64,000 bases of DNA from Mizuhopecten yessoensis (taxonomy: Eukaryota), in NCBI RefSeq assembly GCF_002113885.1, contig NW_018405306.1, positions 128,161 to 192,160 on the forward strand, written 5' to 3'. Position 1 is the first letter of the stretch. Every line of letters starts with the position of its first letter. This document shows, piece by piece, positions 999-27,298 of the stretch. A program made the translations under genes and the position numbers. Under the pieces are notes generated by a model, which made no database searches, was not told the DNA's origin, and saw only the letters and a list, made by a program, of their open reading frames with translations.

Positions 999-1115
999 AT
1001 TAAAGTCTGCAGTGGTCAGTATATGTCGGCCATCGGGACTCCATCGGACATCACAAAGTCCTGCTGACCCTTCATCTACTTTACAATTCCACTCAGGCTG
1101 TTCAAGTGACCAGAC
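999..1115 (-). CDS. WRAP73: WRAP73 coding exon 4 ([39 protein letters not shown]); the gene continues beyond the left edge
   Basis: tttaag acceptor, gtatgt donor, 39 codons with a WD40-type WSPDG motif. Resembles human [39 protein letters not shown]. Confidence 0.95.
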
Positions 1116-3662
1116 CTTAAAGTAAACAAGAAAAGCACTTCAGCTTAATCTGAGACGAATTCTAAAATTCAAAAGATCAACATTCAAATTATAAAAGTCA
1201 ACACAATCAATCTGTTGATTAGATTTCAAAAATTAATAGAAAAGATATGAAAATTATTAAATAACAAACATTTTCTTTGATATCAAAATATAGTTGACCA
1301 ATTCAAAAACTCAATGAAAATTAAAAACAAAAGAAGAGTTTCATATATAAGCATCTAATGTTCCTTTTAGGCAGTTTAATTGATTGATTTTTTTTTACAT
1401 TTAGAGGTTTCTGTACAACTTACATGTCCTATATCATTAATAAAATAAAGGTTTGATTTTTAACATAAATGAAACAATTCACAAATTTCACAGCATAAAA
1501 AAAAATATTTTAACTTTGTCCTATAAAAAATTAACACAGCTCACATCACATATATATTTTTTGTATCCCAATGTAATAATTTCAATGGTACAATAAAATT
1601 TGTGAGCACTAATCCTGATTAATATAAATATCCCTCATTTACTGTTTCATTCTTACACCTTATCTGGGAGAAACACTTAATTGCTACACATGTACATAGC
1701 GTTGAATTCCAATTACACAATACCGGAATTAATTTTGGTACCTTGCATCAAGGGCAGGGCTAATCTCCTTATCTCCTTAATATCTCATCTTTTGTCAATT
1801 TGTTCTGTATTGAAATATCAGGTGAGTATTGTCACCTGTCAGCAGGTGACAGGTAAGTCACAGGTACCTTACCTGGGAATACAATAGGGCCAGTATTGTC
1901 CCTAATCAGGTGTACAAGATGGTTGAGGGGTGTTAACCTACATCAAAGTAAGAGTAGGTAGTCCTGCATAACAGGGGGTCATTAAGCCTTGTTTACTACC
2001 TACCTAGGTAGTTTAACCCAGGTAAGACAAAATGATAGAGTGATTAGGACTACTACCTGAGCAGATTTACCTGTAATCAGATGTGTGAGACTCAGGTGAT
2101 CAAGAAAGGTAACACAAAATGAAAAGTTTGTAATCTGTTACAGATTATATCTATGGAAGTATGATAATGATTGGTGGTGGGGGACAGGGAAAACAAGGTT
2201 ACATCAAACACGGACCTGGGGACAGGGGGTCCTACATCAGACAGAGTCAGAGATTGGTGGTCACACCTAATTACAGTCTTATCAGTAGATCACAACAACA
2301 AGTGAAATTACAGGTGATTTATTTTCACAAAAAAATAACAATTTTAAAACATATTTATATTTTTTTTCCAACTCTTTAATTTCCACAAAGGCTTGTGCCT
2401 TGTCATTTTAGGAAAATATTCTACACCAAAAGCATATTTTGGGAGAAACAAAGCAGTTTTTGATTTTAGGAAAATCTGCAGACATTTTTCTTTAAAGTAT
2501 TCACTGATATTGTCTAATGGATATAAAATCTTACTTGAAATGTGTTGCTAATAGTATAAAGCTATCATATGTTGGCTGTATAAAGCTATCATATGTTGGC
2601 TGTTGTTACATTAAAGATGTGTTACGTAAGGTATGGATTTCTCTTTTACAAATCAGAAATTACAAAACAATTTTCCTTTTATGATATTTAATGTTAACTT
2701 TCGACAATCCATTAAAAAAATGCAAAAAATTTAAGAAGGATCTCTCATGTACGACTTGATAACTTCAGTTTGTCCTAAGCCAGCTCAAAATTACAGACTT
2801 TTCCTTGCAAGATAATTCTTTAGAGGAAGCAAGTTTTCTGTTGACAGAACTTAAAGCTAAATCTAGGGCAAATTAAAATATGAAATAGCTGTACAGTGTT
2901 ATCATCTCTATGGTGAAGGCCATATTCTAAACAAGAATTAAGCAGCATACCAACACATTAAATTTGTCACTAGGCAACTCAATCCTCTCTGTAGATTATC
3001 TGTGTATAGTAAGGAGGTCAACCAGTAATCATTTCACTGCAAATTTACCAGTATAAACTCAGATAAAGTGGTTTGGTGAGAGCTGAGGCCATATGTGGTG
3101 TGGGAATAAGAGGTTTGGTGGGAGCAAATCAAAATCGGCTGATTTCCAATATATCAAAAGTTTGACTTCTTCGTGATGAAATACATTTAATTTAATCCAT
3201 CATGTTATTTCCACATCAATCAGTGAATATTCAATACACAATGCAAATGCAACAATACTTTTCTATTATTCGAAAAATATCACAAAATACATTCTGTACC
3301 TCTAATTTCAAAAATTTCTCCAAAAAATTCAGTCTTGCACCTCCTATTCTTTCATCTCATCTCATAACATAATATCTCATTCTATTATTTTTTTTTTATA
3401 CATTTGTCATATATGTCAAGTATAGGAAAATCAAATACGCTAAAAGGGTGGAGGCAAGGCAAATATTCCGACCAAAAATGGCAAATAAAAATTTCTGATA
3501 AAAGTTCCCATAGAAAACCTAGACTGCATACACAGAGGACACATTCTACATGTGGTATAGCAGTCTATACTACTCAACTTAGCTATCCAGGGCACCATTA
3601 AATGGCTGAATTAAAATAGTGATGACATAATTATTTATATATTCTTGGATTTTGAAACCTAC

Positions 3663-3719
3663 CTGCACAATTCCTCTCTTGTACAACCCACAAAGGATGA
3701 ACTGGGAATCTGCTGACCA
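3663..3719 (-). CDS. WRAP73: WRAP73 coding exon 3 (WSADSQFILCGLYKRGIVQ)
   Basis: ttgtag acceptor, gtaggt donor, phase 0-0. Resembles human WSADSLFILCAMYKRGLVQ. Confidence 0.95.
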
Positions 3720-4152
3720 CTACAAATATGGGGGAAAATGTTTTCATCATCATCATCAACAACAACAGCAGCAGCTCAGGTCAAAAATACAATACTCTAG
3801 CTCATAATCCTATTTGATAAGAAGTACCGGCTGCAAATTGTCAATATTCATTGAAAATCTTATTATCGAACATCACCAGAAAGGAAGAAGTGAAATTGTC
3901 ATTTCTGATACCACTTTGTGAGCATTCCTATCCAAGAACATGCAATATCACACTTAGCTCTGCATTGTACAAAGCTTTAATTTATAAAATATATTTTTTC
4001 TTCCATGTTTTTATTTTTTCATTTGTCAATCAGATGAAATGTTTATACTTTAGTGACGTTTGATCTCTATTAAAAACGACATTTTATGTTATGTCTTTAC
4101 ATTTCCAGCGACTCAAATCTATACTAATTCTCGAAATGTCAGCACCTATTAC

Positions 4153-4248
4153 CTCTATAACTTGTATAGTGTCCAAACAGCTGAAGAGATTCTGTATCTG
4201 AAACGTCTCCACATCCCGCACGATCAACCGAAACTCTGTCACAGACGC
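4153..4248 (-). CDS. WRAP73: WRAP73 coding exon 2 (ASVTEFRLIVRDVETFQIQNLFSCLDTIQVIE)
   Basis: tttcag acceptor, gtaata donor, phase 0-0, lies inside ORF 4084..4341. Resembles human [32 protein letters not shown]. Confidence 0.95.
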
Positions 4249-7200
4249 CTGAAACATCCAACATATAAACCTATTAGACTCAACCAAAGTAATAGCAAAA
4301 GTGTGATCAATATAATTTGCCAAATTTCGAAAACAACTCATTGCATTGTCAATCTACAAACTTTTTATCATTAACAATAACATCAGAACATTTAACAATA
4401 ATCTTCTATATACTGTAGCACCAGGAGGGCACTAGAACTTCAGTCAGCTTTTCGTAGAAACTGCTTATATTTCAAACTATCTTTGAACGATATCAAGATA
4501 GGACAATAGAAATATACAATTTAAAAAAAAGCCTGTACAATTTTGACAAGGTGTGTCTTGTTAATCAAGTTTTGAAATTTTATTTTTTTTTACCAAAATC
4601 TATTGCAATATATATGGTAATTTGGATTACTTTATTACAGAACATGAGATTTGTTTTGAGACAATGTTTTGAAATTTCCTGTTTTCTTTATAATTAATTC
4701 ATTTGAGTTTCATATTATAAATTTAAATAGAACTTTTCAGAAAAAATGAACATATACTTGACTGATTTACTTGAAAATCAGATTAAAAATCCATATTTTG
4801 ATCCTTTAAATTTATTTAATAAACATGTAGATGAAGCAACATGTCTAAACAGATGAATAAAATAACATAACACATGTAGATCAAATTTTGTCAACATTCT
4901 CTTGTTCAATAAAAATCATAAACCTTGATATTTTGCTAAAAGACATTCTAACTTGTTTTTCAATTATCTTCAAATTAAACTTTAAAATGAAACTTTATAG
5001 GCAGCAAAATTAAATTTTTAGGCTTTGCTTAAAGTTTTTTTTGTCTTGTTAAGAAATTGTTGATTTTTAGACACATGCATTCAAAGGTGATATAATTCAT
5101 ATACATAATATGTAAAAAGGTTCAGTTGTTGGCGATACCCAATGTCAGTGTGAAGCATTTCAAGTTACATCACCGTCATGATAGCACCTGATCTTACTAT
5201 GTGTTGCATTCAAAATTGTAATTACACACAGCTTCAACCTGTTATGTTAGTCTGGAGACGTACCGAGCTATATGATAATTTTATGCTAATAACTTGCAGT
5301 ATGTAAATCGTAAATATAGCGACATCAGAGGAAAGCACTTCAAAATCTTGCAGCCCTAATCATTGCAATAATGTCTACAGTTTTGATATCATATTTCTTT
5401 TTGATTGTTTGGAAGTTCTTTTTTACATATATAGAATAAATCACATCCTTCAAAATTACGATAATCAAATTAAAATTAGGTTGTTGTTTTTTCATGTTAA
5501 AATGTTTTTTTTGCTCTTTTGTATTACCATCATCGTCTTCTAGATATGCAGAGAATATTTTTCTCTTTGGCGTGTTAAATGAAGAGGAATCTACAAAGAC
5601 GGTTTTAAGTCCCTTAAAGACTAATATTACTAGCATGGTTAACAAAGCTTGATTTACCTAATCTATAATTCATACCTTGTGCAGTATTTACATTTTTTCA
5701 AATACTATACAGTTGATGTGCATTGTTTGATTGAAATGTTTGGACAGTAGCATATGGTGTATCAGATCTTATAATATACGATTACTTATTACATTCATTC
5801 AACTCTCTCAGTATAAATGTTAACAGTAAACAGTTACACTATTTTTCATTTTTACACTTTTTCATTTAGTGTTTTTTATACTGCTACCGTTTGTAAGCGA
5901 AGCAAACGTTTGGTGGTACAGTATAAAGGCAATATATATGTTTATCATATGGCAGGAGACAAATTGGGAAATTTAAGAAAATATACAATTAAAGGTACTT
6001 ATAACATTCATCCGACTCTTTCAGTTAAGATTTTAGACATTTCACCTCTCTTCTATTTTCCTTTTTTACATTTTTTTCATGAAGAGTTTGTTATACTGCC
6101 ACTATCTGCCAAGAGAAAATTTGGCAATATTAAGGTGTTTTGCACTGTTTGGCAGGACACATAACTTTAAGGGAACTTGAAATAAGAAAACTGAGGCACG
6201 AAGTGTTGGCAGTAAGACAATGGTAAATGGAACAAGGGCATTAATATTTACTAAATTTTCTAATCTCATAAATTTCATTGATTATAGATTAAATTAAAAT
6301 CCAACTACATTAATTAGCTAATAAGTGCCACAAATTTAAATTCAATTGGATTGATAATTGACATGAAAGATTAGCAATTGACATTAATCTTAGTTCATAT
6401 TTAGTCTTTCATATGGTCTGTCAGAAAAGAAGGTTTCTGTATAAGGCATAAACTTTCTGACAACATAGAAAGAAAAAAAACAGGCACTTTTCCTTCAACT
6501 GTTTGAAATCACAAATCGTCAAGAATGTATAACTGTCACTAAATTCCATGTAGTTTATGACATCCATTTTAAAAACATAACATTCAAAGAGTAACACTTA
6601 GTTTTTGTTCAAGTAATGGCCTCTTTATATACATAAACATCAATTTATAAAAATCTTTCCCAATTTATCCCCTTTCGCTTTGGTAATAGGCTTAAATATG
6701 TATGCAAGTTGAACTTAGGTAAACACATGCATTGTGAAAGTTGCAGAGAAGTGAGTTTTACAGATTTAATCTACTTACAATAGATTTACCTAGTTTACTC
6801 TGACATGCCTTACACAGTATTACATCTAAATAGCTCCAATGTAATGGATTACGTCATAAGCCCTTGTTGTTTTCAGAGCACTAATGTATTTATTAAATAT
6901 TATCATTAATTTTTTGTCTACATAAAATTCTACCTATTGGAGAATGTTAAGAAAAACATGTACCTGAAAAGGTGTTTCCCTAAAGTTTGACATCGACCTT
7001 GTTATTTTGTGGTATTATTACATAATGTAGGCATTTCACCCCAACAGTTCATGGGAGGTATTTTATTGACAAATACTTATGATATATGTTGAATGGCTTT
7101 TGTTTTTCTAAGATATTACATGAGGGTATATCTCTTTTTTTTACACATGTAATAAAAGTTTTTTCAGACATAGAACACCATAATATTCACAACCTTAACA

Positions 7201-8688
7201 CCTACTTAGTTACGCAATGCCATGAAGCATTTTCACAGCAATGTGATGTATTAATCACAACACCATGCTCATTGGATTTTATACTGAAAAAATGTCCATC
7301 AATTTATAGCACTATAACAATCCCTAAAAATCTTTATGGCATGTAGATAAATTCTTTAATAAAATATGAACATAACAGTTCGTAGGGTTTTGCATTTATT
7401 TTAATGTGTATAGTTGCAAGAAGGGAGGCAAATCTTAAACAGCAGTTCTATGTCAATAAAGCAAAATAAATCAGTGACTTTCCTCAATACTGGAATATGA
7501 ACTATCTAGCATTAAAGGTCGAGGAAAGTTAGTGAAATGACGGACACATTTTAAATCATATCTATTGCTTATTTTATGCTCAGAATTCAAACTTTATGAG
7601 CACACATTAAACATATATGCCCGGTGCATGATTATTTATACAATTGACACTTTTTACATTTATCTACTACAAAAAAAAATCAATTTTATTTATTTCATCA
7701 ACAATTTAACATAAAGGTTGGTTCATCAAGTTGTTATACCACTTATAATTTGAATTTTTTTTTAACATGACAACAAACCTTTTTTAAGACAAATCAGCTA
7801 GACCACGATAAAATTTCCATTCTGTACCATCGCAATCGTCCAACATCAAAAAATGGTCTAGTCTAATATCATTTCATTGACATAAATTTATCGACCGACA
7901 AAATGTAGTTTCAAATTCAATATTCTATTTAACATACAACTGTAAAAGTTTCACTTCACCTAATGTTTTTAAAATAACATGAAAGTACTAGCCTTTTTGG
8001 AAGTGATGTAGTCAGTTATAAAATTGGTTCTACATAAAAATATATGACAAAATATTCAATTTTTGCCTTTTTTGATAGTTCCTAACAAGAATTATGTGAT
8101 CACTGATATTCACTCATTTTTTTATTTTAATTCACTTATCATTACCTCCAGCTGAATAACTAATCTAGGTACAGTTTTTTCAACACCACATATGTAGGTA
8201 GCTACTAACTTGATCTGAGACATGATGACAGATGTACAAGTTATTGTTAATGGCTTTGTAAACAAAATATAGGGCCATGGATGTGTTGATAGAATGTTAA
8301 TAGAACAGTTTGGAGAATATCAAACTGGCATTAAAATGTCATTAAAACCCTAACTGTTACAATACAATAACTGGTCCACATCAATAGCGGAAACTGCAGA
8401 ACTTCACTTTAATAAAAACAACTTTTATTACAATGTGTGATGCACCAATAGGTATATATAACAAGGTTACAACTACTGTAGGCCTACTTTACAGTTAAAC
8501 AGTATATATATAATCTAAGGCGTATATGATTTTAATGGTAAGAAAGGCATATGTACTGATGATAACCACTAAAATCTACATATTATTACACGAAAATACA
8601 TTAGTTTGACAGTATCATGAATTGTCATGATACATCTTAAAAGAAAACTACCTCAGTCTACTAAGAATCTAGTGACATGTTTCCTTAC

Positions 8689-8757
8689 CAAGTATTTCCC
8701 ATCGGGCGAAAACTTGCAGAGTTGATTGGTTTGTCGAAACAGCTCAGAAAAATTCAT
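8689..8757 (-). CDS. WRAP73: WRAP73/WDR8 coding exon 1 ([23 protein letters not shown])
   Basis: ATG at 8757 on the - strand, 23 codons, donor TTG|gtaagg. Matches the recalled human WRAP73 N-terminus [23 protein letters not shown]. Confidence 0.95.
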
Positions 8758-9190
8758 CTTCTCCTAACTCAGCTAACATGTATACTAAATCGAGAATTGA
8801 ACAAGCCAACAGACTAAGCAACGAGTAAAGACACAATATACATTTTAAATGTCAAATAGCAAGTGTCAACATGCGGATACCGCCATTTTGAATTCAGCGC
8901 CAAAACAATCGCCGCATGCCTGTTATTTCTTACTAAATATGCATTTTAAAATTGTTTAAAACTGCAGACCCGGCTATTTTCTTCTGTCAAACAAATGTCA
9001 AATTGTTGTTTGGGTCGCAAACCTGTCAGGCGTGTCGTAAACAATAGATTGTTTGCAATGTTTTCATAAGTGAACCAACTCCTAGTAGGGGTGCCCCTTT
9101 CAACGCACCGGTGGCTCGCTGATTGGTCAGTTAATCAACAGAGCCCTGGATTAGGTTATAAAGCAGCTTCTATGGCCGGTTAGAGCCATC
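8758..9190. promoter_or_regulatory. Shared bidirectional promoter between WRAP73 (-) and the p53-family gene (+)
   Basis: YY1-type motif CCGCCATTTT at 8880-8889 (AAAATGGCGG on the WRAP73 strand), inverted CCAAT (GATTGG 9121-9126), TATAAAG at 9157-9163 facing +, and locally raised CpG content. Confidence 0.7.
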
Positions 9191-9230
9191 GACCACCACT
9201 GTCATTTCGTCTATGGATATAACCCTACTG
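9187..9230 (+). other. p53/p63/p73: Probable 5' leader exon of the TA isoforms of the p53-family gene
   Basis: Begins about 25-30 nt after the TATA box (start inferred) and ends at donor CTG|gtaatg (9231). Contains an upstream ATG at 9213. Confidence 0.5.
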
Positions 9231-10841
9231 GTAATGTTTTAGTTTTTTCATTAACAGTTTATCTTTAATTGTAAACTAACATCAGCAGCGAAGAAATATG
9301 TTGTGACGTGTTTTCCCGCGAACAGTGTTCACCGCCATTGATATTTTGTACCACGTGGTATGCAATGGAGTCTCTTTGAAGTAAGAGGTAGGCTAGTTTG
9401 TGTACATGGGATGTTATAGACGTATCTATATGTGTTTTGGGGCCAACAAATTTCATGCTTCTTCAACGAAGTAACACCTCAACTCATCATCATCGTAAGT
9501 AACTTATTCTAAATATTTTATCGTGTACAGATATGATAAATTCCAAGTAAACTGTCACAACTTCACACGGGACACGCATGGTATCCCGAGAAATGTCAAT
9601 GGCGGATGGGTTTTCAGAATTTGTATGTCGGTCGTTCATAATTTACGACTCTTATATCCATGTTCACCTTTAATTTGAAATGCATCTGACATTCTGGAAA
9701 TTGTTGGGAAAGGACACATGTAATCGGGAAAACATAAGTTGATTGACTATGTGCTAACTGTTGGATTTTATTTTGTAAACAAAGACTCTTCGGATGTTTG
9801 ACGGAGATATCTTTACCGTTAGCAATTCGTTATCAAATGTATAACGAAGGTTTGTGCTTACTCTATTAATTTAGTTTTATTCATATCATATTCTTGATTT
9901 GAATTTGCATGAATGGATTCATTGACGTAATTGCAAGTTGCATCATATTTATTTTTGCACACTTGTTTATTTTTTGGGTAATTTCCTTCAATGTATTTTT
10001 CTGCTCGAGTTTTATCAATTTACAGTAACTATAAATCATTTATTTTCGCCGTTATATATTTTTAACAAGCATTTTCAATACGGTCTTTTGAATAAATATG
10101 TGTATAAATTAATATTTTAATTAATTGGTAATAAGATAATAAAAAAACACAAAAAAATAAATAAAGTAAGGTGATGATTGAAGATGATATTTTTATAAAA
10201 ATCATTTAAATAGATAAATGTGTATCAGTTAAACCAGTATGTTATAACATGGTTACACAAATGGCTATAATTTGAGGTAGATTTGATCACTTGTATCAGT
10301 TATATTTTACCCTTTGACTTGCTTTGTGGGAATTTAGGGCTAGCCTTTAAAGTTCGGTAATCAGTTGACACTAGAGCCCTTGTGTCAATTTCAATACCTG
10401 TTGGGTATTTTTAAGTCAGTTTCTATGCCTATGTAAAGTAGAAACTAAATCCAGTCATGCATGACATAGCAGTTATTGGTAGCTAGGTCAGGTTTCTTTA
10501 ACAAATTCTGAGTATCAACAATGACATCACCGGGGCAACGTGATATACACACCGTACAAAGAAAATTGAATTCAATAGATATATATTGAGTGTAGGAAAT
10601 TCTGAATATCAACGGCAACACCAGAAAACCAATATTTGGATAAGACTTTTATTGAAGCCTTGGAGGTTCACCAGGAAAATGTAAAAAATTCCATGGATAG
10701 AGGTACTACCATTTCTAGATTTGTGCCATAACTAGAAGATGAAATACTGGATTAAAAGTAAAATTCAAATGGAAGTTAGCTAGTATGTGATGAATTTCTT
10801 TCTTTTGCAGATTCAGTAAATTCATTCATCGTCACCCTGTC

Positions 10842-10960
10842 ATGTCCCAGCTGTCTACTGCTAGTACAACAACTACTAACGGTACACCCTCTGGCCCACC
10901 AATGTCTCAAGAAACATTTGAATACCTGTGGAACACACTAGGAGAAGTCACAGAAAATGG
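10842..10960 (+). CDS. p53/p63/p73: TA exon: transactivation domain ([40 protein letters not shown])
   Basis: Acceptor ttgcag ends at 10810, ATG at 10842, donor gtaagt at 10961. Has the SQETF motif and the MDM2-binding FxxxWxxL. Confidence 0.95.
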
Positions 10961-13900
10961 GTAAGTCTTCTTTAATTTTTCTACCTTTTCCTGAAAAATG
11001 AATTCATATTGATCAATCAATATCATAGATTAAGAAAAAGGACTAATAAATGAACTCCTCGGAATGCTTTTAAAATCACTAATAAGGCCAATTTAAAAAA
11101 ATCTTGTGTTTCCACTAATTCTACCTACCCTAGAATTTTGTACCCTTAAGTTTTTAATGGCATTAAGTGATAAGCAATGTTAAAATCAGGACTCCTGCTC
11201 TATAGAAACAGTAAAAATATGTTTAAAAAACTTTTAAAAATACCTACCTCCTATATATTGTTTCTCTGAGGATGATAGCGGAAACACAAGTAAAAAATGT
11301 TTTGGTCTAATTACTGATCTGGCATAATAAGTCTCAAAACAAATTATTTAAATTTGATTTCAGTGGATATACTCAGATTGCGAGCAGGGAATTAGATTAC
11401 GAATATGCAGAACCGGTGGGTGATGAGACAAGTTTACAGATTGAGAGATTCCAAATTCGAGGCCAAAATGACTCCATATCTGATCTGGTAAGTGCTTTAT
11501 TAAGATTTTTCATTAATAGCAAGTAGTGCCATTTTAGTCTTTAATTTGTCTTTTATCAATTAATCATTGCGTAATTTATGTGTTTTTACAGTTATATTGA
11601 GCAATTTTGCTGATTTTTGTTCTTGTCTATCTAGCTTATTGACACCCAAACAAAATTGTTTTGATAAACTGTGTGAAGCGTGAGCGACTTTGTGACTTCA
11701 TGGTGTGTACACTCCAAAAAGACTACCACTCAGTGCCTAGTCTTGACCACATAGCTGACACACGTCCATTACAAATGTGTTTACCACACATCAGTGTGTT
11801 TTACCTTTAAACATAGGTAACCCCTAATGTTCACCTGTAGCACAACTGCAGACCCACCAAGGGCTTTGTTCTGGGTGTGACCAGGGTCACACAGATAGGT
11901 GAGGAATATGGGGATCCTAAATTTACTTTGAGGGATACAAACATCTTGACAGAATGTTTGATTATCATTAAACAGGCCAGATAGAAAAGGAAAACAAACA
12001 CAGGTCTGGCCTGCTTTTAAATTTTCAGTGTGTACTGTACGCCTGTACACAGCCCCACACACCATTACAAGTCTACAGCCACAACACCATGTGGTTGAGC
12101 TAAAAATAAACACAGGTAGCGTCTCTTCTGGTTGTCAAGGCAACCTGGTGAAGCTTTACTCATTAAAAGCTCTGACATTTGAGCCAGGTTTTCCCAAGGC
12201 CAGTAGGCATTCAGATATAGATTTTCCAGCCTCTGTAGCCACATATAATTATTGGACCAGGCTTTTCCCTTTGTGTAGTATGTAGCCTCGTAACAGAAGT
12301 CATTAACATAATAAATTCTCAGTGAACCCAGTGGTGTGTACCTATATTGTAGATTGAACAGCGCCTGATCTGGTACTTACCTGTACATGTCAGGACAGGT
12401 AGATAATTACGTACCTTAGCAAGACTGGACATGCCACATATATGTAGATATTTCAGTAACTTTAAAGCAGATATTTAGTCTCGAAATGCATCAGTGAGAC
12501 CATTGGATTGAACAGTTATATCTGTGATATATATTTATGTTAGAATTTTTCCTGTGATATTACATACACTCCGTCCAAAATGATTAAGTTTGAGAGAACT
12601 GGATTCACCACATACAGGGTAAGTGATTAGGTGTCGAGTTTATTAGTAACTCGGACCACATGGTGTTGTTAGTAATGTACTTAATTAGAAATTCTCAATA
12701 ATTTTCTTACGACAAAAAAGGGGGGGGGGGGTCAGAATGGGTGTTTATTGGGGGATTTCTTCATTAAATTGAAGTCATTAAGAAATATTAGGGTTAACAT
12801 AGAAATATATCTTTGATCATCCGTATAAACAGATAAATTATGTTTCAAATTTTTTATGTGTTTGAATTAAGAAAGAATTGTTGAAAATTGACATTGATTA
12901 TTGTTTGGTCATTTAACTTTATATTCTATTAATTTTAATCATTATTGAAACATCTCAATCATTCATTATCAATGAAATATTTGTGTACAAAGGTCAAGCC
13001 AGGTGTGTATGCTAATTATATCACTAGCTGCAGACTGTTGCTGGTGAGATCTGCTAAAAATACATCGGTTGATCAATAAATATTGATAGATTTTTCATAA
13101 GAAGCTTTATGAATAGAGGGAAAAGTACAATTTTTTTGTGTTCAACAAAAGCAATTCAGACATAATTTCGAAATTAATTCTCTAAAATATTATTGGAAAT
13201 GTGTTTTCAAACATTTAAAATGTTATTGTTGATTATTTACACTCAGTTTTAAAATACATCTTTTGTTTTGTATCGTTTTAAGTCTTCCTATACAGTACTT
13301 ATCTATTCTTTCATAATTTTATTTTGTGAATATATTGACAAAAACAATAAAGAAAATTTTGTTAAAATAGCGATGTGTGTCCCACTGAAGGTATGAGTGG
13401 GTAGACTTGTACTCAAAATGTCAGGTTGTTCTTATCTGTAATGATATTCATAGACACAAGTAGGTCTAACATGATTACTTCATACCTATCGGCTGGTCAT
13501 ATATATCTACCACACTGACCTACATTATTGATTTATTATCTTACACTACTTATCTCCTTATTAACTGTTGTGAAGCAGAGCCTAATATGTACTGGTTTAT
13601 ACTGAGTTTACCTACCACATGATATAATAAAACTTCTATTTTTTTGAAAAATTTGTTCATAAATTTATTTCTTCTCCAGAAATATTAAGTAATAATACTG
13701 ACATTTTAGTACAAGTGTTAAATATACTCTCAAATTAAAATCAAAATTAAAAGCATCAATAATTTACTACCAGAATATCTAACAAGCGAAGTGTACACAC
13801 AGGAACATGATGGTAAAGATACATAACAAGCAAGGCATAATTGATCGTGAATTAAAATTAAATCAATTTGACAATCTCATGTTTTGATAGGTGTATTCAA

Positions 13901-16900: not shown

Positions 16901-19900
16901 AAGATTGAAGAAAGACTCTGTAGTAAGTGTTAAACTGTTGGAATTAGCTGGGAATATAATCGCTTAAAATTTCAGTATTTTAAAAGTTCCTTTATTTTTT
17001 ACTTGCAGTACTCAGAGGTGCTTAAAAAATTGTACGTACGAATGGCTACAACATGTCCTGTGAGATTCAAGTGTTTACGAAACCCTCCTCCTGGCTGTGT
17101 TATTCGTGCCATGCCCATCTTCATGAAACCTGAACATGTTCAGGAGACTGTCAAAAGATGTCCTAATCACGCAACTTCAAAGGAACACAACGAAAGTAAG
17201 TACCAGTTGATCAGTTTCAAATTAACCGAATAAAATTTCAATTTTCAATATTGATTTCTGTCATTTAAATTACCAATGTAGTGAGAAGTGTTTGAGGAAG
17301 TGCCTGGTTCTGTTACAGAAATTAATGAAAAAATTATTGGCAAATTTTGATCACTGAATCGGTAAAGAATATTTGTTTCCCGAGGCGAAAAATGGCATGA
17401 CCTTACTTTTCCTGATTAGCTTCTGTGTGTTATCAAAAGACTGAATATGTCAAAATGTTTGCAAAACAGTCAGGGGTGTACGAATAATTAATTGATAGTG
17501 CTGCTGATTGTTTTCAGCATGATGTTCTGCTGTACAAAGGCCACCTGTTATAGTTATTGATCAATAAGCCATTAGGGTAATGAATGTTGTTCATTAATGA
17601 ATAATGACTATTTGTCAGAGCTTATTGACACGTGTTTCTACTATTATCAACAAAGTTGTAAATATAATTAGTCCCAACGAAATAGAAATTAAAATTGAAA
17701 ATATGCAATAGTCTGCTTTTAGACTTAGTTATTGATTTTTTTCTCACAAATTTCGGAATTTAAATTTAATTATTGACTTTATTTCTTCAGATCATCCTGC
17801 ACCTACTCATCTTGTCCGTTGTGAACACAAACTTGCCAAGTATACAGAGGATGGCTATACTAGCCGACAGAGTGTACTCATTCCCCACGAACATCCCCAA
17901 GGTAATGGTCTAGTTCTCAAAAGTGACATTCATTCACATATTTTGTCACAAACAAACAAAACCAGTTTAGAATAGAAATGATTGTATTTCAACAGTGCAA
18001 AAAATTAAAATGAAATGACAATTCCATTTTCTACTATATTTTTTTGAAGGCAAATATTTACAATTGCAAATTTTGCTTTGAATTCTTGAAATACTCATTA
18101 GACTAATATTAATATGGTTTTTTCTACAGCTGGTTCAGAATGGGTGACAAACCTTTTCCAGTTCATGTGTCTTGGTTCCTGTGTTGGTGGTCCCAACAGG
18201 CGACCAATCCAGATTGTCTTCACATTAGAACGAGAGTAAGTAATTCATATCTTAACAGAGGGTAACTATTCCGGGGGGGGGGGGGATTTCATTTATATAA
18301 TTTTCCAAGAGATGTAAAATGGAAAATTTGTCAATTTTATTATCTTTAAATGTTTCTCTTACTCTAAACATTGAACAGAAGAAGAAGAAAAGGGAAAATA
18401 GTTTTAAGATGAAACAACCAAAAAAATATGACTAGCTGGCCGATGCCTTAACTCATTCATCCCTACATATTTAAATTGGACTTGCCCAGTCTTTGATTTG
18501 GTAAGGTCCGAATGTGACTTTAGAGGTGAAAGGGTTAATGATTTAACAATGCAGTTATTATAAATAACAGTTTATGAAAAGAAACTTCAAAAGACCTGTG
18601 AAATAATGAGTTGAACATTTTAAAGTGTGCATATTAATTTTCATGTTTGGAAGAAAGCAATTATAATGGTGGTGTCAACTTTTGTTGTAGTAACCAGGTG
18701 CTAGGCCGTAGAGCCGTTGAGGTGAGGATCTGTGCATGTCCTGGCCGTGACAGAAAGGCGGACGAAAAAGCTGCTCTTCCTCCTTCCAAGCAATCTCCAA
18801 AGAAAGTCAACGGTAAGTTGGGATTCATATTAAGTTTAAAATGGAACGTGTTTGTAATTCAACATTAATTGAAGAAAACATTAATGGTTCGTATTAAAGT
18901 GAAAGACTTGCAATTCTTCTTCTTTAAATCTTGTAAAATGGATTTGTGAATTTTATTTTCATGGATTTGTGAATTGTGATTTCACTTTCTTTTGAAGGTT
19001 TCGGAAAGGTAACCATGGGAACAGAAATCACATCCATCGGCCCTGGAGGCAAAAAGAGGAAGATTGATGGAGAGGAAGCATTCACTCTTACGGTAAGATT
19101 TTTGAACACTTGCCCCAAAATTCAGAATGATGTGAATAATGAACATTTTGTCATAACAAGTGTAGACAGTGTTTCTTTAGGCCTGTATGATTAAATAGTA
19201 CAGTATGTTATATGCCGTTTTAAAAACGTCTCAAAAAAACAAAACAAACGTATAAATAGTTTCTTTGTAACAGGCCTCCTAATGTTTGAAAGGACATCAC
19301 GATCATGTTCTGATGATTGGTTGTTTCAGGTGCGAGGACGCGAGAACTACGAGATCCTGTGTAAGCTAAGGGACTCCCTTGAGCTGTCATCTATGGTTCC
19401 ACAAAACCAGGTGGAGTCGTACAAACAGAAGCAAGTGGAGATAAACAGACAGTAAGTACATGTCACTGTGTCTATCATTGTACTGTGTAGTGGTGTAGTG
19501 ATATAGTCTTGATGTCATCAATATCTGTGTAGTCGTAGCATTCATATACTCCAGTCATATTGCCATTTCCAAATCCTTATCCGTCAGAATTAACAGCCAA
19601 AAAAATCAACTTGGCCAAAGCAAACCATGCTTTTAAAATGTTGGAAAATGAGTAAAAGTTCAAAGAAAAATCTTCCTAACGAAATTTTGTGAATTGTACA
19701 ACAAAAGTAAACAGCAACTTTCATTTATGGGAGTGTTAGGTCAATCAAAATAACCTACTGTTTCTTTTTTAAATAAAAATGTAACTTTATTTCCATTATT
19801 TAACTGTTTAAAAAATTGTGGGTAATAACAATTTTGGGGAAAATTTCACTTTAAATTATCAGTGGCAGAATAAAGATTTGGAATACATGGCAATAGGACA

Positions 19901-22900: not shown

Positions 22901-25900
22901 TTATCCAACATACATTTTATAAGGGAACTAAATAATTATAGTTTGAAATGTTATACTTTTCAAGATTTCCTGTTTTCAAAACTGAAAGAAAGACGACAAA
23001 ACATTTTGAAAAGTATAACATTTAAAATCAAATTCTTTCTAGTTCTCTTTGAAAGAAGATTACAAAACAAAACAGATGTGGATCATTCCAACTACTCAAT
23101 AGGACTCTTAAAGAAGATTTTCAACTAAATCGACTTTGTAAATTCCAAAGAAAATGATATGAATTAACAATCAGGATCAAGATTTAGGTACACACACACA
23201 CAAAGTCCTGGATTATCAAAAGGGTGTTTACCCAATTTTCTGAAACTAATTTCAAAAAGTTGTTTTAAATTAAACATGTCCGAACTTGATGTATTTAAAT
23301 CAACTACCCAGTTAATTTTTTGTCTCTTTATCAATTCAGAAAAATGTAAAGTCACTCATTACCTTTTAAAAAAATCAACAAGTCTCAACTTGATTTTAAA
23401 AATAATCCGCTTCTAATATTACCCATTAAAAGCACTTTAAAAATTCTCTGAAGTGATTTTTCTGGTTGACTAGCTAGAATATTAGGAGGAGACATAGATA
23501 AACACTAAAATTAATATATTACTCAAATGTTCAAGGATTTTAAAATTATCTTATGTCTTATTTAAACAGCTATTAGTGTGATTGTTCAGGAATTTTTGTT
23601 ATCTAAAATAATATGATTTATGCAAATTTATATTGCAACAATAAGTAATAAAAACTTGACAAAGGAAAATTTTGTTTAGGATCTGCCTACATAATCTGCT
23701 GCTGTAATAGTTGATAAAATATCATTGAGTAAAGTTGATATACCTTAAAGGTGTCCAGAGGCACTTACATGTGGTAAAGGGCTAATATTGGACATGTCAA
23801 AAAAAAAATCTTGTATATTTTACACAAAAGTAATATTGATACAAAGATCACTTTGTAAAGGGGTTAATGATGGTAAGCTAAAGACAAAAAGAACCCATAA
23901 ATATGTGTGCTAATGTAAAGTTTGAAAAAAATCCATTAAATGATGAGTTTTAAGACTTTGTTAACTCGTTCACCCCTAAAGTCACATCTGAACCTTACCA
24001 AATCAACGACTAGGCAAGTCCAGTTTAGATATGTAGGGGTGCATGAGTAATGCTTACCAGAATTTTAATATCTATATGCATCTGTTTAAAATTTCCAAAT
24101 TATTGTAAAATTGCACCTTTGATGACAGTAATATTAAAACCCTTAACAAATATTATCAAGTCCTTAAACATTATTTTCAAAACAACATCCAACAACTTGT
24201 CAAAATTCTGAAAAGGAAAGTTCAGGAGAAGGAAATTTCTTCAAAAAACGGTGTTACAGGGAAAATTGTAAGCATATCGGAAAAGCTGGAAAGAATAAAA
24301 AAAATCTGCAAAAAATAGACCTTCAGAAAAACAATGTGTTGTGAAAAAATAAAACTTTTTTATTGCAAAACAGAAATTAACTGAATTAAGTATTTATAAA
24401 TTCCATCCGTGGATGCACATCATATTAAAAAATTAAATTGTCTGATCAAACAATGTCAGCAGAACCCCAAAAAATCATTATTATCAGTAATGTCTATAGA
24501 GTTTTACATCTGCCAAATACAGAAATGACTAACAGACATGCACACATTTCTAGCACAACATTGTGATCCGAACTCCGACTTTCCAGATATCTTGTCAATT
24601 TTATCACTGTATCTTATTCACATAAAGTTCGAAAAAACAAACCGAAAAAAGTCGGATTAGGTCGTCTTTTTAGAATTCCAACATCAACCTGGGTTCGAGC
24701 AGCACATTTTTGTGTGTAAAATATGTTCCAAAAGAGCATATGTATGATTTTGCTTCTCTTATAAAGACACAAAATGATTTGCGAGTATCAAACATAAATT
24801 ACAGTCTGTGGTTGGAAATGGCTAAACATCAGTTTAAAGATTAAACAACCAGGTGGACAACATTAAAAACTATAGAAAGTGTGTTTTCTGACCTTGTCTA
24901 ATCTGACTTCCCAAGGTGTCGGGTACGACAGGTTTTATTGTGTCAGATGAACACAACTGATACCAGTAGACTTAAATAACCTAAATATCAGACGCCTACA
25001 GTAAGTAGAGATAGACTTCAAAACATATGTTAACAACATACAGTCCCAGTAACTACCAAAAGGCCTAATCTGTAATCCTCAATATTTTTTCAGACCATCC
25101 GCCACACATCTTGTGTCCATCCCAAGTCGAGAAGGTACCCCTGTAACGACCCAGACGACCATGCCCTTCGGTACCGAGTCCACAGTGCAAGTAACAAGCT
25201 CCCAGAATGGTCATCCAGCCGTCACGGTCCAACAGGTTCTGTCCGCCCCTGTCGACAATCTCAGTCCCTCGGCCATCAAGGAGGAGCTTAGCTCAACACT
25301 CAATGGGTGTGCCATTGACAATTCCATCAAGAGGTTAGTTCGAAGTTTTCCTCCTGCCACAATGATGTGGAACAAGATTGTGGGCTACTTTGTCATGAGT
25401 CAATGTTTCAATGCAGAATGGGGGAGGGGGGGGAGACGTAGACTAATTTGTTCAATTACATCGCTGAATATAACATGATGCTGACTATATTGACTCTGAT
25501 TTTCGACACGTTCGGTCATTCCAACGTCTGCTGAATCCCCAAATAAATTGCTCGTTTTAATCTTGTGTGACTGGTTATGTTAACCACTGCTCATCTGAAC
25601 TATTGATATACATTTTGTATATATATATCTCCTCTTTGGTTTAGAAAATCGGCTATAATACAACATTGAAAATGCAAAACAAAGTTTTGTTATTAAATAT
25701 TTAAAAACAAAAACTTTGCACAATTTTTCTGGTAAATGTTAAATTGACACATTATCTTTGTTTAAACATAAGAAAATATAACATTTGTTTTGCTTACAGT
25801 TGGTTAGCGAGTCTTGGTCTGTCGGCATATATTGATAACTTCCACCAGTTGAACCTCAGCACTATGCAGCAGCTGGAAGATTTCACTATCGAGGTAAGCC

Positions 25901-27298
25901 TTCCTTTGCTTGACAGGAATTCTTCAGGCAGCAGTCGTACTCAGAGTCATACACTAAATGCTAAGTTTGTTTTGAACAGAAACAGTAACTGAAAATATAT
26001 TTTGTTCCTTGTCTGCCAATCCAATAAATTCAACTGTCAGAAAATATCTAGAAATTTCACTAAAGAGCACTCAAATTCTACCGCGGCAGTCAGAGGGACA
26101 GGTCATATGTTTTCAATTATTAATTCGGCACAATTGTGGCTTACTAAGTTGTTTTCAGCGGTTTAGAGTCGAGATACCGGTCATTTGCACTCTTTGCTCG
26201 ACAAAGGAAACAGAGATCTTCGAAAGGTCACAAAATAAGTTTTCAATAACAGTTTTTGTTCAAAACAAACTTAGCATTTATTATTCATTCCAAACTAATG
26301 AATCTTATGCCGAATAGTCATACACTCATTTCTAGGGCCATTAAATGAACCCATTTTCTGTATACTAGAGGCACTCTGTTTCCAAAATTTGTCAAGCCAA
26401 ATTGCAAAAGATATTTTCTTATCACGGCTTTCTATCTTTTCTAATACTCAAGTAATTCCATAAACAATAAGAGGTAAGTCGTTTGAAAATGTACAATTTT
26501 TCCAAATTTTCCCAATTATTTTTCATAATTTGAACCCTCTTCTGAAATCTGTTGCACTTGTAACCCCTAGGCATAATGATGCCATCAGTATTGGAGAAGC
26601 TCCCTGGACTTGACAAGAAAGAATGTTAATTTCCTCAACGACGTGCAGGTCATATATACTGGACACTTAATGTAATGTTGAGTGTTTACAGTTGAAATAC
26701 AAAAAGCAGGTTTCGATAGATCTAAAAAATACTAGGTACATGTTTTATTACTCAAGGAGTTTTTTGCAACCATTACATGTTCTGTTCCCTAACTGAACTT
26801 TTACTGATGCTACAATCAATGAGGAAAGTTTGCTACGTACAGCAGCTAAAACTATATTGATTTTGTTATAAGGTCTTTTTGATATCATCGTGTTAGGAGA
26901 AAAAATCCTGATACTTAGGACTGTTTTGTATGAAACCATGAAGGGATGGTAAAATGAAAATTAGAAACTAAATGTGACCGTTATCATTACAGGACCTTCA
27001 GAAAATGAAGATCGGCACAAGTCACCGAAACAAGATCTGGAAAGCATTGGTAGAGCAGCGAAACCAGTCGGTGATTCTGTCCGAGTCGGCCAGCCTCCAA
27101 CACGAAATCTCGACTGCATCAACAATGAGTATGTCATCCCAGAGCAGCATCACTCCCACCTCCAACTACTGCCCCGGCTACTACGAGGTCACCCGGTACA
27201 CATTCAAACATACCATCTCTTACACGGCCAAGGCCGGCGACAAGGATTCCAGTAGTCCATCGACAAAGCGACAGAAACGGGAAGATGAATGTGTCTAG
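10842..27298 (+). CDS. p53/p63/p73: p53/p63/p73-family transcription factor, TAp63/73-like SAM isoform, 14 coding exons, 624 aa: join(10842-10960,11364-11487,14181-14279,14637-14707,16218-16296,17009-17195,17791-17901,18130-18235,18691-18812,18998-19092,19330-19451,25094-25333,25800-25893,26993-27298)
   Basis: All introns are GT-AG with compatible phases (1875 nt in total). Contains [14 protein letters not shown] motifs [20 protein letters not shown] and [12 protein letters not shown], the oligomerisation domain, a SAM domain and a TID-like YTFKHTIS. Confidence 0.96.
11083..11310. mobile_element. MITE-like insertion in the intron after the TA exon
   Basis: Imperfect terminal inverted repeats taaggccaa...cttgtgtttcc and ggaaacacaag...ttggtctaa. 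Confidence 0.55.
11364..11487 (+). CDS. p53/p63/p73: TA-specific exon ([41 protein letters not shown])
   Basis: tttcag acceptor, gtaagt donor, phase 2-0, open reading frame. Confidence 0.92.
12380..12579 (+). promoter_or_regulatory. Internal (P2) promoter for the DeltaN isoforms
   Basis: p53-RE-like TAGCAAGACT-GGACATGCCA at 12417-12436, inverted CCAAT (ATTGG 12502-12506) and TATA-like TATATATTTA at 12528-12537, directly upstream of the DeltaN exon. Confidence 0.65.
12580..12618 (+). CDS. p53/p63/p73: DeltaN alternative first coding exon ([13 protein letters not shown])
   Basis: AAAATG context, 13 codons, strong donor AGG|gtaagt. Phase 0 matches the exon at 14181. Position corresponds to vertebrate exon 3' and resembles the short DeltaN leader I recall for mussels. 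DeltaN-SAM product is 556 aa. Confidence 0.85.
14181..14279 (+). CDS. p53/p63/p73: Common exon ([33 protein letters not shown])
   Basis: ttgcag acceptor, gtaagt donor, phase 0-0. SSPY motif as in p63/p73. Confidence 0.93.
14637..14707 (+). CDS. p53/p63/p73: Common exon, proline-rich ([23 protein letters not shown])
   Basis: tttcag acceptor, gtaagt donor, phase 0-2. Leads into the conserved PSNTDY. Confidence 0.93.
16218..16296 (+). CDS. p53/p63/p73: DBD exon ([27 protein letters not shown])
   Basis: ttacag acceptor, gtaagt donor, phase 2-0. Contains the L1-loop lysine (KSTTWT). Confidence 0.96.
17009..17195 (+). CDS. p53/p63/p73: DBD exon ([20 protein letters not shown]...[15 protein letters not shown])
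   Basis: ttgcag acceptor, gtaagt donor, phase 0-1. Zinc ligands in RCPNH. Confidence 0.97.
17791..17901 (+). CDS. p53/p63/p73: DBD exon ([37 protein letters not shown])
   Basis: cttcag acceptor, gtaatg donor, phase 1-1. Confidence 0.96.
18130..18235 (+). CDS. p53/p63/p73: DBD exon ([35 protein letters not shown])
   Basis: ctacag acceptor, gtaagt donor, phase 1-2. Zinc cysteines and the R248-equivalent are present. Confidence 0.97.
18448..18538. mobile_element. About 90-bp TTAA-flanked MITE (piggyBac-like)
   Basis: ttaactcattcatccct...agaggtgaaagggttaa; related copies occur elsewhere in the window. Confidence 0.7.
18691..18812 (+). CDS. p53/p63/p73: DBD C-terminal exon ([41 protein letters not shown])
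   Basis: ttgtag acceptor, gtaagt donor, phase 2-1. R273- and R280-equivalents are present. Confidence 0.97.
18998..19092 (+). CDS. p53/p63/p73: NLS/linker exon ([32 protein letters not shown])
   Basis: ttttgaag acceptor, gtaaga donor, phase 1-0. KKRK NLS and start of the oligomerisation domain. Confidence 0.92.
19330..19451 (+). CDS. p53/p63/p73: Oligomerisation-domain exon ([40 protein letters not shown])
   Basis: tttcag acceptor, gtaagt donor, phase 0-2. Includes the p63/p73-type second helix. Confidence 0.96.
20349..20511 (+). CDS. p53/p63/p73: Candidate additional terminal exon ([54 protein letters not shown])
   Basis: Strong acceptor ccttttttacag. The phase-2 frame is open for 53 codons and ends in TAG TAG; GC content is exon-like. 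Confidence 0.45.
20627..20729 (+). CDS. p53/p63/p73: p53-like terminal exon with a basic tail ([34 protein letters not shown]); TA product 445 aa
   Basis: ctcatttcag acceptor, phase 2 matches the exon ending at 19451. Lys-rich tail resembles the C-terminus of SAM-less bivalve p53 proteins. Confidence 0.88.
21920..21970 (+). terminator. Probable poly(A) site of the SAM-less isoforms
   Basis: TGTA (21920), AATAAA (21932-21937) and a GT-rich downstream element after about 1.2 kb of UTR-like sequence. Confidence 0.6.
23961..24050. mobile_element. About 90-bp TTAA-flanked MITE, inverted relative to the copy at 18448
   Basis: Reverse-complement similarity to 18448-18538 along its length. Confidence 0.7.
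25094..25333 (+). CDS. p53/p63/p73: p63/73-isoform linker exon ([15 protein letters not shown]...[21 protein letters not shown])
   Basis: tttttcag acceptor, gttagt donor, phase 2-2. Confidence 0.92.
25800..25893 (+). CDS. p53/p63/p73: SAM-domain exon ([32 protein letters not shown])
   Basis: ttacag acceptor, gtaagc donor, phase 2-0. SAM signature WLxxLGLxxYxxxF. Confidence 0.95.
26993..27298 (+). CDS. p53/p63/p73: Last exon: SAM end and TID/HOMO-like region ([19 protein letters not shown]...[15 protein letters not shown]...KREDECV*)
   Basis: ttacag acceptor, phase 0, in frame with ORF 27005..27298. RYTFKHTIS resembles the p63/p73 TID RFTLRQTIS. Confidence 0.95.
   Translation, partial: DLQKMKIGTSHRNKIWKALVEQRNQSVILSESASLQHEISTASTMSMSSQSSITPTSNYCPGYYEVTRYTFKHTISYTAKAGDKDSSSPSTKRQKREDECV

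Follow-up and report, generated by a model that had tools for sequence, protein, structure and literature searches.

A scallop WRAP73 gene and the animal's only p53-family gene form a divergent, interleaved pair that is probably ancestral to bilaterians

The name WRAP73 stands for 'WD repeat containing, antisense to TP73', and the protein acts at centrosomes and cilia, while p73 drives multiciliogenesis in vertebrates. WRAP53 (TCAB1) belongs to a different WD40 family. Localisation to the centrosome or its satellites and binding of SSX2IP (Msd1) are known for the human and yeast WRAP73 proteins (PMC4442821), and TP53-WRAP53 is described as a natural antisense pair in the work of Mahmoudi et al. 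2009, as cited there. In fish, the gene order prdm16-tprg1l-wrap73-tp73 has been reported (PMC7014666). More generally, hundreds of conserved ancestral microsyntenic pairs (CAMPs) exist in animals, and pairs standing 5'-5' with less than 1 kb between the genes are over-represented among them (Irimia et al. 2012, PMC3514665). Here we analysed a 64,000-nucleotide stretch of the genome of the scallop Mizuhopecten yessoensis (contig NW_018405306.1, positions 128,161 to 192,160; hereafter the window, whose coordinates are used unless the contig is named), in which WRAP73 on the minus strand lies head-to-head with a p53-family gene on the plus strand. We consider it probable that WRAP73 and this single p53/p63/p73-type gene are an ancestral bilaterian, interleaved divergent pair, retained through the interdigitation of p53-family promoters with WRAP73.

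The original prediction had joined four minus-strand exons into a 113-aa N-terminus and recognised it as WRAP73. Each of these exons translates without stops, the GT donors and AG acceptors are canonical and exon 1 opens at an ATG. The exons were queried singly in protein searches, and genome searches covered 987.6 Mb in 82,659 contigs. When the 39 aa of exon 4 were compared by phmmer with 1.84 billion proteins, single-stretch matches appeared at residues 75-112 of proteins of about 440-470 aa, which is the place expected for this exon given the 74 residues that precede it, and these position-matched proteins bear the name WRAP73 (in salmon, porcelain crabs, Schistosoma and conifers). The top matches of the same search were long multi-WD40 proteins whose scores sum many repeats; these were discarded. 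By tblastn, salmon WRAP73 (P0114) is collinear with the exons at residues 1-23 (78% identity), 22-55, 56-75 and 74-114 (identities for the last two in Table 1), and the salmon, crab, plant and Argopecten proteins all align exon by exon, from residue 1 to about residue 449. All 449 residues of the Argopecten protein (P0237) are covered, with exons 2-4 93-95% identical and protein identities of 81-100% to Argopecten irradians across the exons. The gene thus traced has about 14 exons and extends from contig position 136,917 down to 71,621 (about 65 kb), continuing to the left of the window. Salmon WRAP73 matches no other locus genome-wide. The exon 1 peptide (beginning MNFSE, MNFSD or MNFAE) opens WRAP73 in 12 of 12 other animals compared, from Trichoplax to fish, with hardly any change. 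Pfam searches with single exons returned one weak WD40 match (E 0.0094), which is below the cut-off and not diagnostic; full-length orthologues match many beta-propeller families. Judged by the position-matched names and the collinear similarity at a single locus, the identification holds, and the minus-strand gene is the single-copy orthologue of WRAP73 (WDR8).

Two further observations concern this gene. The DNA of exon 1 (8684-8760) is 80-86% identical over about 75-80 nt among scallop, abalone, Lingula and stickleback, which is unusually high for such evolutionary distances. To the left of the window, WRAP73 contains an 89-bp unit repeated about 30 times in tandem (contig 73139-76035, L011:4979-7875). 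The unit is derived from a WRAP73 coding exon (residues ~351-375), including its splice donor, and many copies retain an open frame that is 60-80% identical to the Argopecten exon.

The plus-strand gene carries, in order, a transactivation domain, a P53 DNA-binding domain, a tetramerisation motif and the two halves of a SAM domain (Table 1). Each SAM half alone scores just under the cut-off, the halves are consecutive on the profile, and SAM_1/SAM_2 is carried by the orthologues of the gene in Argopecten, Haliotis, Owenia and Lingula. No second locus with a P53 DNA-binding domain or tetramerisation motif was found in a genome-wide profile search. On these profile matches, this is the animal's only p53-family gene, with a p63/p73-type architecture.

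The region between the two genes was examined with RNA data from three raw-read runs and one contig run, all from unstranded libraries, aligned to 5001-11000. Reads whose alignment ends at 8688 carry on with the start of WRAP73 exon 2 in reverse complement, and this exon 1-exon 2 splice is seen in three runs and one contig. RNA depth spans 8601-9200 in all runs, and the coverage from 8689 to about 9200 implies a WRAP73 5' untranslated region (5'UTR) of several hundred bases. On the p53 side, a joint 9230>10811 (9229/9230) is supported by 37 reads and one contig, and a joint 9494>10811 by 55 reads in three runs; both are flanked by GT..AG. In run X22, which holds most of the p53 reads, depth rises from 0.7 in 9001-9200 to 18.6 in 9201-9400. 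This step, together with the TATAAA box, is consistent with the proposal of a TATA-driven start of the p53-family gene near 9187, which would lie about 25 bp downstream of the box and 60 bp downstream of an inverted CCAAT box. One 2.2-kb RNA contig comprises WRAP73 mRNA, runs gap-free through 8688-9229 and is then joined to p53 exon 2, which indicates that the WRAP73 and p53-family transcript populations abut or overlap. The head-to-head arrangement is supported by RNA that places both proximal transcription starts inside 8758-9230. This interval is single copy genome-wide, and GC content reaches a local maximum of 0.44 in 9000-9249, compared with 0.27-0.30 in the flanks. Alignment of the start interval with Argopecten gives 79.6% identity over 987 nt, and no other non-coding block of the region is longer or better conserved.

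The RNA also differs among runs and from the assembly. The use of donor 9230 relative to donor 9494 is about 1:17 in run X21 and about 1:1 in run X22, which suggests a tissue-specific choice of first exon or start site. The RNA runs carry two fixed differences from the assembly, T>G at 9207 and C>T at 8970, and of 15 reads in run X22, 9 have one extra nucleotide after 9314; all three are probably polymorphisms in the promoter/5'UTR interval.

The pair is more than adjacent. One RNA contig joins 10811 to sequence outside the window, located at L007:1293-1322, within an exon that opens with an ATG and encodes 56 aa up to a GT donor (Table 1). Its reading frame is in frame with the downstream ATG of p53 exon 2. 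This distal first exon lies 27.4 kb inside WRAP73 and about 18.7 kb to the left of the window, in a 26-kb intron between the WRAP73 exons that encode residues 171-201 and 200-251. The annotated p53 coding sequence (CDS) of Argopecten begins at the homologous exon, 20.3 kb inside WRAP73 and with 91% protein identity. In Haliotis, the p53 CDS starts 20.8 kb inside WRAP73, at an exon that closes with a similar ..NPxCR motif and is spliced at the same position. From these alignments, the distal exon is conserved in Argopecten and probably also in Haliotis. A distal coding exon within WRAP73 means that the two genes overlap in antisense over about 27.6 kb in this scallop; in molluscs, WRAP73 and the p53-family gene overlap across tens of kilobases.

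A second element was found inside the part of WRAP73 that lies in the window. Most intronic DNA does not align with Argopecten, and a block in intron 3 (1602-2294) does; it is single copy genome-wide and is a candidate regulatory element or enhancer, or a candidate unannotated exon. The idea that WRAP73 introns hold enhancers of the p53-family gene is partly borne out: a p53 coding exon and its promoter are nested there and one intronic block is conserved, whereas the enhancer role itself is putative.

We surveyed 12 WRAP73 orthologues with 10 kb of flanking sequence each. In the bivalve Argopecten, the gene upstream of WRAP73 is a divergent p53-family gene (with P53, tetramerisation and SAM domains). 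A divergent p53-family gene has the same position in the gastropod Haliotis, in the annelid Owenia (ATGs 250 bp apart) and in the brachiopod Lingula (ATGs 526 bp apart), and a divergent p73-type gene with a 1.2-kb overlap is found in the teleost stickleback Gasterosteus. When the scallop p53 exons were used as tblastn queries, DNA-binding, tetramerisation or transactivation domain exons were detected in the flanks of Argopecten, Haliotis, Owenia and Lingula, and no match was obtained in the flanks of the remaining surveyed species. Adjacency without an intervening gene is therefore seen in Mollusca (three species including this one), Annelida, Brachiopoda and Vertebrata, and the 5'-5' orientation is identical in all species that have the pair. 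Other genes lie upstream of WRAP73 in the cephalochordate Branchiostoma (an EGF/ZP gene), the starfish Acanthaster and the acorn worm Glandiceps (MRPL51 in both, head-to-head), the cnidarian Nematostella (SPC12) and the placozoan Trichoplax (XRN1). No gene was called in the 10-kb flanks of the catshark Scyliorhinus, the intended vertebrate control, or of the lobster Homarus, which are uninformative, and the stickleback was used as the vertebrate control in place of the catshark.

With four other invertebrates (Argopecten, Haliotis, Owenia and Lingula) sharing the linkage, and with the stickleback pair beside them, the survey supports the original prediction that the pair is older than the protostome-deuterostome split. 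The pair was found in mollusc, annelid, brachiopod and teleost, but none was found within 10 kb in amphioxus, echinoderm or cnidarian. As a separate observation, the MRPL51-WRAP73 divergent pair of starfish (L018 8556-9595) and acorn worm (L019 8371-9775) looks ambulacrarian-specific; DNAJC11 adjoins it in starfish.

A third gene ties the molluscan and vertebrate loci together. In both Haliotis and stickleback, WRAP73 is followed tail-to-tail by an hSac2/TPRG1L-like gene, the fish gene being tprg1l, and the two hSac2 genes give six collinear exon matches to each other. This shared neighbour supports the view, also put forward earlier, that the TP73 locus retains the ancestral context. The stickleback locus continues with a PRDM gene. 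The three-gene block is not kept in scallops: the hSac2/TPRG1L-like gene is on another scaffold in M. yessoensis, and the Argopecten neighbour at the corresponding position is a RING-finger gene. In Lingula, CCDC50 is a neighbour at the WRAP73 locus. Human TPRG1 adjoins TP63, and CCDC50 also lies at 3q28; these placements would fit a duplicated ancestral block.

Adjacency is usually lost over half a billion years. By a rough estimate, the chance that a named gene becomes the divergent neighbour of another is about 1 in 10,000-40,000 per lineage, and a third neighbour held in common in one orientation makes it smaller still. Given these low odds and the usual loss of adjacency, the pair appears to have been inherited from the protostome-deuterostome ancestor. 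The divergent pair would already have existed before protostomes and deuterostomes split; spiralians and the vertebrate TP73 locus would have kept the ancestral context, and the pair would have been broken independently in cephalochordates and ambulacrarians. In cnidarians and placozoans, it would be either absent or lost. The retention may be explained by p53-family promoters, first exons and probably enhancers that are interdigitated with WRAP73, so that a breakpoint separating the interleaved genes would damage one of them. Such a bystander or regulatory-block constraint would act on top of a compact bidirectional promoter and would not require tight co-expression.

Several observations weigh against this proposal. 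In Branchiostoma, Acanthaster, Glandiceps, Nematostella and Trichoplax, the 10 kb beside WRAP73 yielded no p53-family gene, and with the pair missing in five lineages, several break-ups must be assumed; a simple count sets one gain and at least two losses against two gains. The count draws on spiralians, a teleost, a cephalochordate, two ambulacrarians, a cnidarian and a placozoan, with the catshark and the lobster contributing nothing to it. The splice of the distal exon is supported by one contig from one run, and the coverage in 9000-9230 may come from either transcript, the libraries being unstranded. Read depth over p53 exon 2 relative to WRAP73 exon 1 ranges from about 1:1 to about 50:1 among three runs, although depth is a poor measure of expression and three raw-read runs are all that enter the comparison. 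Finally, amphioxus and starfish, in which WRAP73 has other neighbours, also carry a YY1-like site ahead of the ATG of this gene, and its persistence there makes the WRAP73 core promoter look autonomous.

The last two points bear as much on the most serious rival, that the ancestral pair is held together by one shared bidirectional promoter that co-regulates both genes, for example in ciliated or germ cells, with interleaved p53 regulatory DNA playing no causal part. Both starts fall inside about 470 bp under gap-free RNA coverage, the start interval is the non-coding stretch that the two scallops conserve best, the ATGs are separated by just 250 bp (Owenia) and 526 bp (Lingula), and among conserved pairs a 5'-5' spacing below 1 kb is the hallmark of a bidirectional promoter (PMC3514665). 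Even so, among the three RNA runs the depth of one gene relative to the other varies about 40-fold, and the TATA-like box on the p53 side and the persistent YY1-like site on the WRAP73 side suggest two core promoters. The variable depth ratio and the persistence of the YY1-like site lead us to favour interleaving over strict co-regulation, and we regard a single shared promoter as unlikely, if worth serious attention. Less probable still is that the pair simply survived in slowly rearranging genomes without selective constraint. The scallop, Owenia and Lingula lineages do appear to retain much ancient gene order and the pair is gone in five sampled lineages, yet vertebrates kept it through two genome duplications together with a third neighbour, and the p53 coding exon nested in WRAP73 offers a concrete reason for breakpoints to be harmful.

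An independent origin of the adjacency in spiralians and vertebrates, by convergence or chance, would agree with the lack of the pair in all sampled non-vertebrate deuterostomes, the cnidarian and the placozoan, and a plain count favours two gains. Against it, the same two genes have the same 5'-5' orientation and overlap in both groups, and the hSac2/TPRG1L-like gene has the same position and orientation in Haliotis and stickleback, a repetition whose chance is negligible. The odds per lineage and the shared third neighbour together make two independent origins very unlikely. We give almost no credence to an assembly or annotation artefact, or to a WD40 gene other than WRAP73: apart from the weak per-exon Pfam match, nothing was found in its favour, and the collinear full-length similarity to named WRAP73 proteins speaks against misidentity. 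Misassembly is ruled out by the RNA contig and reads that bridge the start interval and by the independent Argopecten assembly, which has the same arrangement with 80% DNA identity across the junction.

Beyond an ancestral, interleaved pair, we can imagine a regulatory unit more than 550 million years old, in which a distal promoter within WRAP73 serves an N-terminally extended p63/p73-type isoform and a centrosome/ciliogenesis gene is linked to the ancestral p73-like factor by antisense transcription through WRAP73 or by a shared promoter hub. We hold this to be a speculative and rather improbable extension. If true, the coupling would anticipate what p73 does in the multiciliated cells of vertebrates.

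Full-text literature searches found no report of a WRAP73-p53-family linkage outside vertebrates, although the supplementary tables of PMC3514665 may list the pair. The linkage provides a positional anchor for the p53 family outside vertebrates, as the single spiralian gene has the neighbours that TP73 retains: WRAP73 and, in abalone, a TPRG1L-like gene as well. This shared context supports a p63/p73-like ancestral locus. WRAP73 linkage could also serve as a synteny marker where protein trees fail, for instance in lamprey, where a study of the p53 family found the flanking genes uninformative (PMC4743058). The p53-family promoters and coding exon nested in WRAP73 give a concrete account of the persistence of WRAP73-TP73 and suggest regulatory coupling.

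Table 1. Features of the WRAP73 and p53-family genes of M. yessoensis (window coordinates unless the contig is named; a dot marks features without strand).
Feature	Position	Strand or orientation	Remarks
Distal p53 first exon	contig 109,315-109,484 (L007:1155-1324)	+	opens with ATG, 56 aa, ends at GT donor
WRAP73 coding exon 4	999..1115	-	residues 75-113, 39 aa; identity 68% salmon, 93% Argopecten
Conserved non-coding block, WRAP73 intron 3	1602..2294	.	79% identical to Argopecten over 720 nt
WRAP73 coding exon 3	3663..3719	-	residues 56-74, 19 aa; identity 75% salmon, 95% Argopecten
WRAP73 coding exon 2	4153..4248	-	residues 24-55, 32 aa; RNA-joined to exon 1
WRAP73 exon 1, coding part	8689..8757	-	ATG 8757-8755, 23 codons; 5'UTR extends toward higher coordinates
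Divergent promoter/5'UTR interval, WRAP73 ATG to first p53 donor	8758..9230	.	~470 bp; sequence, motif scan, RNA
YY1-like site	8881-8889	WRAP73 orientation	motif scan
Inverted CCAAT box	9122-9126	p53 orientation	motif scan
TATAAA	9157-9162	p53 orientation	sequence
Proximal first exon(s), p53-family gene	9187..9494	+	donors 9230 and 9494, both to 10811; predicted start near 9187
p53-family exon 2	10811..10960	+	ATG at 10842, transactivation motif; borders set by RNA joints and loose ends
P53_TAD (PF08563)	10887-10946	+	E 9.7e-10
p53-family exon 3 start	11364..11393	+	exact match to loose-end consensus of RNA reads behind 10960
P53 DNA-binding domain (PF00870)	17006-17206, 18120-18236, 18689-18772	+	above curated cut-off
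p53 tetramerisation motif (PF07710) exon	19321..19410	+	E 1.8e-9
SAM domain halves	25798-25893, 26981-27046	+	SAM_1/SAM_2 profile positions 10-41 and 39-61

The closest known system is the vertebrate TP73-WRAP73 (WDR8) pair, in which orthologous genes stand 5'-5' with overlapping 5' ends; in stickleback, the CDS of the p73-type gene begins 1.2 kb within WRAP73. The scallop differs in that the partner is a single unduplicated p53/p63/p73 gene whose distal coding exon is found 27 kb into WRAP73, within an intron, and in that the TPRG1L-like gene, adjacent in fish and Haliotis, is not adjacent in scallops. TP53-WRAP53 is similar in having a WD40-repeat gene head-to-head with and antisense to a p53-family gene, but whereas antisense regulation is described for that pair, the scallop pair is known from overlapping transcription units. 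Deeply conserved divergent pairs are already well known as a general phenomenon, and CAMPs such as the bidirectional HSPE1-HSPD1 pair likewise consist of unrelated genes that are adjacent from spiralians to vertebrates, 5'-5' and with very short spacing; the scallop pair differs from them in that an alternative promoter and coding exon of one gene are nested in the other. This nesting recalls the genomic regulatory block or bystander model, in which the regulatory DNA of a developmental transcription factor is spread through a housekeeping-type neighbour and locks both genes in place, although here the likeness consists of one nested promoter and exon and one conserved intronic block, recognised from sequence and RNA.

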